Part shown: positions 8,900 to 13,311 of the stretch, piece after piece
Layout: each line of letters opens with the position of its first letter
Numbering within the stretch: position 1 is the stretch's first letter
Source of the DNA: Blastocystis sp. Blastoise
Lineage: Eukaryota; Protista; Bigyra: Opalinata
Reading direction: 5' to 3'
DNA length: 64,000 bases
Assembly (NCBI GenBank): GCA_039096225.1
Contig: JBBPEB010000004.1
Coordinates: 992,001-1,056,000 of the forward strand
The notes under the pieces: generated by a model
The model's input: the letters and a program-made list of their open reading frames with translations, nothing else
Database searches by the model: none
Told to the model about the DNA's origin: nothing
Program-made: the position numbers and the translations under genes

Positions 8900-11800
8900 A
8901 TGCGTATTTCAAAGCTTTCGATTATATTCATTTGCTTATTTATCTGTATAAATATATTTATATCTATTAATTAATGAGAAAATCACAATTCTTTAGGTTT
9001 TGCTTCTGCTAATCTTCGTCGTCTTCAAGATGATGATGATGATGATTCTCAAGGTAATGATGCTGATAAAGCCAAATGTAATGGAAATGGATTTTATGAT
9101 AGTGAAAAACAAAAATGTGATTGTGACCAATATTTTGGAGGGAGTGACTGTTCAAAGACATGTCTTTATGATATAGATGGTGATGGTACTTATGATATTT
9201 GTTCTGGACATGGTACTTGTAATAATTCTACTTATGTTTGTACTTGTGAGTTTGGTTATATTGGTGAAGGATGTTATCATCAGTGTCCTACTTCTAAGGA
9301 TATTGATGGAAATGAAGCTTTATGTGGTGGAAATGGTCATTGTGTTATACAAGGTGAATATGAAGAACAAGCTGCTGTTTGTCAATGTAATGATGGTTTT
9401 TCAGGAATAAGTTGTGAACAAGGTTGTGCTTATGGTATAGGTGATGATGGTCAAAAGAGTGTTTGTTCTGGTCATGGTATTTGTGGCGTTGAAATTGATG
9501 AAGAAATGCAATCAGTTCATACATGTTCCTGTAATAATGGTTATTATGGTGAAGATTGTAGTCAATTCTGTCCAGGTCTTACTGTAGAAAATGGTATTAC
9601 TTATGAATGTAGTGGTAACGGTGTTTGTAATCGTAAAACATTCGAATGCACATGTGAAACTGGAGTCAAAAGCTTAAATACTACTACTTGTATGATATAG
9701 ATTTTTTTTTTGTTTATAATTCTTTTTTTTTTATTATTATATTGTTTTATTTGTTATGTTATTTGTTATTTTTTATTTTTTTTTTATTTATTTTATTGTT
9801 TAATTTATTGTTTAATTTATTGTTTAATTTATTATTTTATTATTTTATGATTATATATATTATATATATATTATATATAATCTCTAGGTGCTTGTTCCGA
9901 TGACGCTAGTTCTTGTCATGGAAAAGGTACCTGCAAATCAGCATACGGATGCAAATGCTTAAATCAAGGGTATATATAATGATTATTATTGTTATTGTTA
10001 TAATATTATAATTATAATATGATATTATGGTTAGTATATTATAGTTATTATTAGCGTATATACATAATTTAGATTAATAATAATAATAATTGCTATTATA
10101 TAGTACTATTGGTAAATGGTGTAATGCCTTTTGTGATTACAGAGAAGACTGTTCAGGAAATGGATTATGTGATAAGTATATATATATAATCATAATCATA
10201 ATCATAATCATAATCATAATAATCATAATCATAATAATATATAATAATATATAATAATAATAATAATTCTATATATAGTGAGCTCTTTTTAACAACAAAA
10301 GAATGCCGTTGTATTCGTGATTTCTATGGTGCTAATTGTAGTAAGGAATGTAATAACGAAATATGTAATGACCATGGGTCCTGTGATTCTACAGGTATAG
10401 TTATATATATTATATTTACTTATACTTATGATTCTACTTATTATTATTATTTATATACTTTTCTTCTATTTATTATATTTATTATTATTATTTATATATT
10501 TTTCTTCTATTTATTATATTTATTCTTATTATATATTATATAGGTTCATGTGTTTGTAATGACGGTTACAGCGGAGAATTCTGTGACACTGGATCTGACC
10601 CTATTCACGTAGAAGTCACATGGCTTATTCTTATTATTGTTCTTCTCATTCTTATTATTGGATATATGTGCTGGAAGAATTATGTATATTATTATATATA
10701 TAGAATAGTTTTTTTAATATATTTATAAATAGTATATTAATTATATTTATATAGTCAAGAGAACCCAAATATAAGCTTCAACCAGTGTATATATTTATAT
10801 ATAATATATAATATATAATAAAACTATTTAGTAGTCGTCCAATTGTACATGACCCTCAGAACACTAAAGGATTATTGGCTCGTGAAGATGACGTACCAAG
10901 GGAAGAACCTGCTCGTACTCCTATTCTTAACAGTATATATATATATATATATATTCATTTAGTGTTTTTGTGTATATATTTATATCTTTTTTAAAAGTAT
11001 AGTCTGTTTTATTTAAACTTGTTTAAATATATTTATTATAATAATATATATATATATAGATATTGATGGATGGACTTGTAATGCTTGTACTTATGTAAAT
11101 AGAAAGGAAGATACAATATGTAAGGTGTGCCACTCTGAAAGAGAAGAAAAGGTATGTTATGTATTATATTATATTATATTATATACTATTATATTATATT
11201 ATATATATAGAAAAAGACAAAACGTGCTATTCGTCATCAAAAGGATATTAGTGTTCCTGAAGATTCCCATGAGAATACTCAAGAAGAACCCTCAAGTTCC
11301 TTAAATTTCCAAGATAGTGATGATGAATCAGATATTAAGATCACTCGTAAACGAAGAGGGCGTAAAATTGATATTGATGCTATGAATGCTCCTTCTCCTT
11401 CTCCTGCTGATGCTACTACTACTGCTACTACTACTACTACTGTTAATACTAATAATAATAATGATAATACTACTACCAAGGATAATACTAATGATGCTAC
11501 TACTACTATTGCTACTAATGAGAATACTGAATCTAATAATGAAGAACAATCTACTGCTCCTATTGATTTATGGTCAAGTGATAATATCAGATTATTATGT
11601 CAACTTATTAGTCGTTCGGATGATTCTATTAATCTTCTTTTGTCGTATACATTACTTACAGAAAAAACTGTGTCTAATTTCAATACTGAAGTATATATAT
11701 ATATCTATATTAATAATAATGGTATTCTATGTATATATATATACCTATATTAATAATAATGAAATTCTATATATAATATATATAATATTAATAATAATGA

Positions 11801-12123
11801 AATTCTATATATATATATATAGATATCTGCTCCTGGTTATGTTCATTTAACACCTGCTGTTCCTTCTTCGAATGAATTTACTACACATGATTCTATTATT
11901 ACTCAATCTATTACTGTATTTATAATCATATTATTATATAGAATAATCATTATATTATAATATTAATTATACAATAATGATTATATAACAATTATATATA
12001 TTTCAATGTATATAGTGTTCTCCTTCAGAAGGTAAGCCTATTAAGTTACGTATAAAACTAACATATACATTAAATACTGAAGAAATCACAGAATCTTCAC
12101 CTTCTTTGAAATTAAACTTCTAA
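8900..12123 (+). CDS. Type I membrane protein: signal peptide, ~8 tenascin/teneurin-type EGF repeats, TM helix, RanBP2/NZF zinc finger, low-complexity hinge, gamma-adaptin ear (GAE)-like domain; 12 exons
   Basis: All exons join in frame through GT-AG introns. Motifs: MRISKLSIIFICLFICFASA; repeated CSGHGxC...CxCxxGYxGxxC; WLILIIVLLILIIGYMCW; WTCNACTYVNRKEDTICKVC; VSNFNTEISAPGYVHLTPAVPSS...ITQSITCSPSEGKPIKLRIKLTY; TAA at 12121. Confidence 0.85.
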
Positions 12124-13311
12124 TTATTATGTATTCTAGAAGTATATAAATAGGTATTTCTTTTCATTTTTACATATTTCTAAGTTTGTCTCTTTTCATC
12201 ATTATATTGTCACTTATGTTGTATGTAATATATATGTATCAATATTTATATACATTATTATTTATTATTTTTTTAAAATATTTATATAATTATTTTCAAA
12301 CGATTATCATTATTGATTTGTTCAGTATATTTTGTTTGTTTATCATTATTTGCTTTTTAGTAATGTATAGAATTCATTATATGTATTCTTATGTTAACTT
12401 TTCACATCAAAAAAATGAACAAATAATAAGTTACACAAAAATGAAGAACTCTTTATAGTAAACAATGTATATGCTGGTTCTGAACAGTAAATAAAAATGT
12501 AATATATTTAAATGAGTATTAGTTAATTATTAAGGATTACTGAATGCTATTGTATATAGCTTATCGAGTAGACGAACCGTGATAAATGAAATAATGGATA
12601 TATAAACAGTTTTCAACGTCATTATTAATCATTAATATATTTTTTTAAATCCAAAATTGTACATTCACGAATATACAGATAAATGAATAATACTGTACAA
12701 TACATGGACAAATAAATAGAATCTAACTAATATTAAACGATGAAACATCATAAAACTTGAAAAAACAAGGATTATTCGAATAATCGGTATATTGTACAGA
12801 TATGACTTATTAATTCTAATCCTACGATTATTTTTGATATGGGAACTATTCCTACAAATCATAAAAATATTTATCTATCGTTGTATAAAGAAATTGTGTT
12901 TAAAAGGAATTCATTTAAATAAAATTATTCTTGAAATGCTAATACAATGTTTTGGTATTTATCTCTCTTGCTTCTTTTTGACATTACTTTGAGTTTTTAT
13001 CCAATTAAAACCACACAAAAGATTATCAACAAACAGGAATCAAATTTTTAGAGCTTCTATAATGATCTCTAGACATTATATTATAAAGCAGATTTAGAAA
13101 AACTTGAATAAATACACTAGATGCAATTCGTACATATAAAAATGAAAATGAGATTCTAGGCCCAATGAAGCTACTTCCGTGGTTTTATTAGAAACCTGTC
13201 TGTAATCATGGATTTATTCATGTTTCTTAGGATGACGCACCTTAAAAGTTAACTTCTTTTCTCTATTGCAAAACTCATAGATGTTTTTTGTTTCTGTGTT
13301 TTGTTTTTATA

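Follow-up and report, generated by a model that had tools for sequence, protein, structure and literature searches.

The window, the whole 64,000-nt stretch of DNA that was analyzed, corresponds to C13:992001-1056000 in the genome of a tortoise-type Blastocystis (33.3 Mb in 34 contigs, GC near 23%, with long AT-rich introns). On its forward strand, a gene model of 12 exons runs from an ATG at 8900 to a TAA at 12123 and encodes 684 amino acids with no internal stop. All introns have GT..AG borders and are 45-198 nt long, the intron phases of the 12-exon model close, and the GC content of the introns is 7-16%, compared with 26-44% in the exons; the splice junctions were deduced from the sequence and from the orthologues described below. 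The predicted protein consists, in order, of a signal peptide, eight EGF repeats, one transmembrane (TM) helix, a RanBP2/NZF zinc finger, a low-complexity hinge, and a terminal domain of about 110 amino acids. The Pfam scan (24,736 families) was run exon by exon, so that domains split by introns were scored in pieces. The features of the gene are as follows.

8900-8945 (+), exon 1: ATG and hydrophobic signal-peptide core (hydropathy, gene model)
8997-9689 (+), exon 2: EGF repeats 1-5 (Pfam PF23106, E 4.3e-19, and PF07974, E 7.6e-16; five stretches)
9009-9050 (+), within exon 2: LRRL motif followed by an acidic run, behind the signal peptide (similar in L018, L022, and P0013)
9888-10394 (+), exons 3-5 (9888-9969, 10104-10175, and 10279-10394): EGF repeats 6 and 7 and the start of repeat 8 (Pfam, gene model)
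10544-10683 (+), exon 6: end of EGF repeat 8 and TM helix at about 10615-10671 (hydropathy)
10755-10786 (+), exon 7: juxtamembrane micro-exon, counterpart of the micro-exon of the orthologues
10832-10932 (+), exon 8: linker between TM helix and finger (gene model)
11060-11151 (+), exon 9: RanBP2/NZF finger at about 11068-11130 (PF00641, E 1.2e-6)
11211-11558 (+), first part of exon 10 (11211-11690): basic patch, then acidic, Thr/Asn-rich low-complexity hinge (Pfam, hydropathy)
11559-11690 (+), last part of exon 10: first third of the ear-like domain (hhalign to the AP-1 gamma ear, PF02883 match of L038)
11823-11915 (+), exon 11: middle third of the ear-like domain, with a conserved xSxP[KG]Y start (orthologue alignment; no family match alone)
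12016-12123 (+), exon 12: last third of the ear-like domain, with a KP-hydrophobic-K motif, and the stop codon (PF02883, orthologue alignment)
12333-12340 (+): polyadenylation motif TGTTTGTT, 210 nt past the stop codon

EGF families were matched by Pfam in exons 2, 3, 5, and 6 (best E 4e-19). The repeats of exon 2 are six-cysteine units with acidic loops, of the same type as in teneurin/tenascin-type EGF proteins (PF23106, PF07974), and the number of eight units was obtained by eye. Exon 6 encodes one strongly hydrophobic helix (Kyte-Doolittle 2.92 over 19 aa), which has a hydrophobic counterpart in six orthologues, and the N-terminus of the protein is also hydrophobic. Judged from hydropathy only, the protein has the layout of a type I membrane protein, with a signal peptide, EGF repeats, one TM helix, and a cytosolic tail. 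The Pfam matches, the hydropathy, and the count by eye together supported the signal peptide, the roughly eight EGF repeats, and the TM helix that a preliminary description of this DNA had proposed. The phase-1 intron after about 15 codons, which ends exon 1, was also present in L018 and L022, and the introns of exons 3-5 (two of phase 2 and one of phase 1) were found at matching places in L022. Acidic residues and an LRRL or LRLL motif lie right behind the signal peptide in the window (9009-9050), L018 (280-310), and L022 (1515-1545); this conserved motif is possibly one for pro-peptide cleavage and maturation or for export. Four other EGF-rich proteins (P0002, P0012, P0014, and P0016) were rejected as orthologues, as they do not have the tail with TM helix and finger.

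Searches with the EGF exon identified the gene in eight further Blastocystis sequence types on gut-metagenome contigs: L018, L022, L025, L027, L031/L032, L034, L036, and L038. The contigs have a GC content of 29-57%, their introns are about 30 nt long, as is typical of human-type Blastocystis, and pairwise identity is mostly 68-82%. EGF repeats, TM helix, and finger occurred in the same order and on one strand in all eight types. The frame from the TM exon to the stop codon closed with introns of 28-34 nt at shared positions and phases in every one of the six types checked (L018, L022, L027, L031, L034, and L036). The equivalent of exon 7 in the orthologues is a 26-nt micro-exon encoding KxPRFAEK (phases 0 and 2), and two phase-0 introns in the region of the ear-like domain are common to the window and the orthologues.

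These data bear on the case that the preliminary description had named against itself, namely a split into two genes. The adjacent genes would then encode an EGF-TM protein and a soluble adaptor made of finger, hinge, and ear. Such an arrangement would accord with the finding that an already-spliced transcript contig of the gene, crossing the junctions, was not found among metagenome contigs, and with the low complexity of the tortoise introns, which allows other splice choices. However, the distance from TM exon to finger is only 168-218 nt in seven orthologous types and is filled by two short introns and the conserved micro-exon; it contains no ATG in L018 and no polyadenylation motif in any type. 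Because the orthologue frames close, the micro-exon and the ear introns are common to the types, and this gap is so short, a split into two genes is very unlikely. The frame from the TM helix to the ear-like domain is, on this comparison, very likely one gene, and the proposed single gene with its order of domains was borne out by the in-frame 12-exon model and by the orthologue contigs.

The motif TGTTTGTT has been described as the polyadenylation motif of Blastocystis (PMC5608401). None was found between the TM helix and the ear-like domain of the window gene; the copy behind the stop codon is weak evidence by itself, since 5 copies are present on the forward strand and about 3.2 are expected. 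Of the words sampled from the gene, shares of 0.52 and 0.40 were present in two RNA-type runs (run X1 may be DNA), where 0.555 is expected for all exons plus the 3' end and less than 0.29 for either half of the gene alone. The word shares point to spliced expression of both halves, and say nothing on whether these form one transcript. Exon 2 and two pieces of the ear-like domain each matched a single locus in the genome, in searches that scored the best candidates only. The gene is apparently Blastocystis-wide and single-copy. In the flanks of the human types (L018, L022, L025, L027, L031, L032, L034, and L036), a protein kinase gene was seen upstream and Pam18-like and NFS1 genes downstream, in varying combinations; this synteny is absent beside the window gene, whose neighbour (from about 13350) looks like an aldose 1-epimerase gene.

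The finger encoded by exon 9 scored 28.1 bits against PF00641 (zf-RanBP, cut-off 27). The fingers of L018, L022, L034, and L038 scored 30.8, 31.1, 32.7, and 36.6 bits, respectively, and that of L031 was marginally below the cut-off (26.9 bits). The frame W-x-C-x2-C-x3-N-x6-C-x2-C was kept in all Blastocystis types, and the window finger has the four Cys, the Trp, and the Asn at the fixed spacing of the RanBP2 type. Its PDB matches were the fingers of Nup153 (the best match), HOIP, HOIL-1, TAB2, TRABID, and NPL4. In the ubiquitin-binding subgroup of NZF fingers, the first CxxC is followed by Thr-Phe or Thr-Tyr and the second contains a hydrophobic residue (PMC11372445), and the window finger has T-Y and Val at these places. 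The preliminary description had called an NZF finger with this signature. A RanBP2 finger with the T-Y motif was confirmed in the window, but conservation of T[FY] failed in seven types, and the only other type to keep the motif was L038, with T-F. The dipeptide is T-M in L018, L027, L034, and L036, T-K in L022 and L025, and E-H in L031/L032. Ubiquitin binding by the window finger is plausible, and as a genus-wide function it is doubtful. The Blastocystis finger thus resembles NPL4, TAB2, HOIP, TRABID, and Nup153 fingers in its Cys/Trp/Asn frame and, in the window, in T-Y and Val, and differs from them in that it lies in the tail of a protein that crosses the membrane once, and in the variation of the ubiquitin-binding dipeptide across the genus.

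Behind the finger, a polybasic patch of the PKRVRR type was seen in nearly all types (window 11211-11235, L018 1835-1855, and L027 4365-4385), usually directly after a phase-0 intron. It could serve in binding acidic lipids or as a nuclear signal. The hinge that follows varies among orthologues in both length and sequence. A scan of the hinges for the clathrin-box pattern found it in L018 only among the types scanned, and not in the window, and a scan of the tails for Tyr or dileucine signals found none that is conserved. Exon 10 yielded no relatives, either in a word search or in a larger search; P0001, a candidate relative of this exon, was rejected as an unrelated low-complexity repeat protein.

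The patch also bears on whether the tail stays on the membrane. If the protein were a receptor similar to Notch or teneurins, with a tail freed by proteolysis as a soluble finger-hinge-ear adaptor or as a nuclear factor directed by the patch, this would accord with the position of the patch right behind the finger, with the conserved juxtamembrane micro-exon and the LRRL-type motif near the N-terminus, and with Nup153 as the top PDB match of the finger. However, no transcription-related domain was found, and basic patches also bind acidic lipids; we regard such release as quite improbable.

A homologous terminal domain of about 110 amino acids was found in seven of the eight orthologous types as well as in the window. 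Its only Pfam match in window exon 12 was PF02883 (Alpha_adaptinC2; positions 84-110 of 111, E 0.092, 13.5 bits). In L038, where an open frame naturally covers the first two-thirds of the domain, the only match was to the same family (positions 3-47, E 0.28, 11.9 bits). All exon pieces fall below the cut-off of 27.6 bits. The genome also encodes a complete AP-1 gamma-adaptin with its own diverged three-exon ear (L008 445-4638; G000:C19:585444-589637), and the first exon of this true ear scored E 0.15 and 12.8 bits. Weak PF02883 scores are therefore expected of a true split ear, as a genuine ear exon scores no better. A genome-wide PF02883 search yielded AP-2 alpha and beta-COP only; it missed the intron-split AP-1 gamma ear and may miss other intron-split ears too.

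The first segment of the domain aligned in register with the AP-1 gamma ear exon (hhalign P 4.8e-4). In a shuffle test it gave z 4.6 and p 0.003 over 18 comparisons, which is borderline after correction, and it gave no signal against the AP-2 alpha, beta-COP, and gamma-COP appendages. The last segment matched the AP-1 gamma ear with P 0.015, and the middle segment did not match it (P 0.18). Structural searches were made with a partial model: AlphaFold of two-thirds of the domain, with intron-derived inserts, gave five strands at pLDDT 56, where the beta-sandwich of an adaptin ear has eight. Foldseek returned no match at E 0.001; GAE chains (gamma and GGA ears) made up 9 of the 43 weak Foldseek matches listed, and VIA-align did not single out gamma or GGA ears; the Z of GAE chains was only 2.8-3.5. 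ESM Atlas searches with two pieces of the domain gave nothing usable, and PDB sequence searches with each exon of the domain or with alignments of it found no ear.

These sub-threshold scores, the PDB searches, the absence of a significant fold match, and the borderline p value are what would be expected if the domain were another small beta-rich domain that resembles an adaptin ear by chance or convergence. We think this improbable: out of 24,736 families, two segments from two organisms both hit this one, and their matches are collinear; the genuine AP-1 gamma ear exon likewise found no ear in the PDB, and the length and terminal position fit. By sequence comparison, the terminal domain is probably a gamma-adaptin ear, with AP-1 gamma-adaptin as its probable source. 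The two have in common a C-terminal domain of about 110 amino acids behind a hinge, a probable ear (PF02883) in the window protein, with the first segment in register; unlike AP-1 gamma, the window protein has no adaptin trunk, its ear introns are at different positions, and the middle segment has diverged. The GAE domain of the preliminary description is made probable by the collinear PF02883 pieces and the register of the first segment; the scores stay below the cut-off and the partial model gave no significant match. Conservation among the types is highest at a Pro-Lys/Gly turn and in a basic strand. In gamma ears, residues of the Pro-Lys turn and basic strand presumably line the site for accessory peptides, and their conservation here is suggestive of accessory-peptide binding.

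The exception is L031/L032, in which the gene ends about 80 codons past the finger and has no ear (L031 3408-3684; L032 7695-8200). The next gene, tail to tail, encodes a Pam18/Tim14-like J-protein. This lineage is abundant (clusters of 52 and 8 proteins), and the T[FY] motif is also gone from it. Since the ear is present in the tortoise lineage, which is distantly related to the human subtypes (PMC10690189), loss in L031/L032 is the simplest reading. In a tree of the large EGF exon, mostly unresolved and with long branches, the ear-less type fell within a group (95/89) to which neither the window nor L034 belongs. The ear is dispensable, since this lineage does without it, and co-evolution of finger and ear cannot be shown from one loss event.

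GGAs have the layout VHS-GAT-hinge-GAE, and gamma and GGA ears bind AP-1 accessory proteins (PMC13581114). Like these adaptors of animals and fungi, the window protein has an unstructured hinge and a probable terminal ear outside AP-1, preceded by a possible ubiquitin-binding module. Unlike GGAs, it has EGF repeats and a TM helix in place of VHS (Pfam, hydropathy), no match to GAT, which binds Arf and ubiquitin, with the zf-RanBP finger in that position, and no conserved clathrin box in its hinge; and whereas GGAs are soluble and recruited by Arf, it has a conserved signal peptide and TM helix. The predicted protein is not a GGA in these four tested features, and its tail resembles the second half of one. 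The "built-in GGA-like adaptor" of the preliminary description was overstated, given the lack of VHS, GAT, and a conserved clathrin box and the complete AP-1 gamma with ear kept by the genome. The tail would be at most a module for the recruitment of accessory proteins, and one lineage does without it. Re-use of an ear has a precedent, as the GGA ear has been reported as a late gain, in opisthokonts (PMC3473312). The re-use seen here would have originated in a stramenopile, independently of GGAs.

Plant VSR/BP-80 receptors are type I proteins with EGF repeats near the membrane that are sorted by adaptor coats through short Tyr-based tail signals, and their tails carry no folded coat domain. 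Compared by description with these and other EGF-TM cargo receptors, the window protein shares the type I topology and the EGF repeats next to the membrane, and differs from VSR/BP-80 in having neither a PA or thioredoxin-like ligand domain nor a conserved Tyr-based tail signal. No PF00641 or PF02883 was present among the precomputed domains of 120 listed EGF relatives (175-733 aa), and the finger pattern was absent from 168 proteins examined; among the relatives listed from outside Blastocystis, neither finger nor ear was seen. The literature searched contained no protein of this architecture, in agreement with the preliminary description; searches outside Blastocystis were limited by a length window and by shared words. 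Keyword look-ups did not find the gene in a survey of Blastocystis trafficking genes (PMC5608401). Each of the component parts is known, and no described precedent was found for their combination.

We lean, by a little, towards a membrane-anchored sorting receptor or scaffold that recruits AP-1 accessory proteins. Its EGF-repeat ectodomain would have been joined to a RanBP2/NZF finger and to a copy of the hinge and ear of AP-1 gamma-adaptin, and the protein would cycle between the trans-Golgi, endosomes, and the surface. The ectodomain would hold a luminal or external ligand. The tethered ear would bind acidic-aromatic motifs of AP-1 accessory proteins, by analogy with gamma and GGA ears, and concentrate sorting machinery there, and the finger, where T[FYM] is kept, may bind ubiquitin carried by cargo or coat proteins nearby. 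Since the protein has no Arf-binding domain, no domain for cargo signals, and no conserved clathrin box, it would assist an AP-1/clathrin coat and not substitute for one. Tentatively, and with rather less than even confidence, the protein can be seen as an integral-membrane clathrin-adaptor module, a receptor with a functional gamma ear and ubiquitin reader that seeds the assembly of AP-1 accessory proteins from the cargo side.

The same single gene with the same ear-derived domain could also encode a surface receptor for adhesion or sensing, in which the tail was repurposed and its modules serve signalling or cytoskeletal anchoring. The teneurin/tenascin type of the EGF units, the shifts of the finger dipeptide through T-Y, T-F, T-M, T-K, and E-H, the strong divergence of the middle ear exon from AP-1 gamma, and the loss of the ear in one lineage all accord with this, and GAE-type folds reportedly also occur outside clathrin coats, for example in the BBSome (PMC7018513). 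However, the best conserved positions of the ear are those of the putative peptide site, and the arrangement of hinge and terminal ear is retained in eight of the nine types; we consider a repurposed tail unlikely, though to be taken seriously. The coat proteins on which gamma-adaptin ears have been described are soluble and are recruited transiently. If the sorting receptor is real, an ear that is permanently anchored in the membrane and joined to an ectodomain facing the ligand would turn round the usual scheme, in which it is the adaptor that finds the cargo. The gamma ear would then have been recruited independently for a second time, in parallel with GGAs, and, within the reach of our searches, this would be the first gamma ear on a transmembrane protein, with the ear-less lineage as a natural control. 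It would also illustrate a reshuffling of trafficking modules outside animals and fungi. The gene is conserved in Blastocystis, which is the commonest eukaryote of the human gut (PMC5608401). As the types differ naturally in whether the ear is kept and in whether the finger has the ubiquitin motif, the function of the domains is directly testable with small recombinant domains.

Other adaptins of the genome were also seen. Two of the beta-1/2 type (L007 496-3790, on G000:C22, and L005 3660-6669, on C31) seem to end in an acidic tail, and no appendage domain was visible in the frames read. Two are epsilon-like (L006 3198-6901, on G000:C24, and L010 1766-6420, on G000:C19); in the one on C24 the appendage is replaced by a tail of repeats rich in Phe, Gly, and Ala that contains DPF and DLF motifs, like that of an accessory protein. 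AP-2 alpha (L002 1105-2988, 890 aa) and a beta-4-like adaptin (L004 3391-5412, 731 aa) are encoded by long uninterrupted frames in this intron-rich genome.
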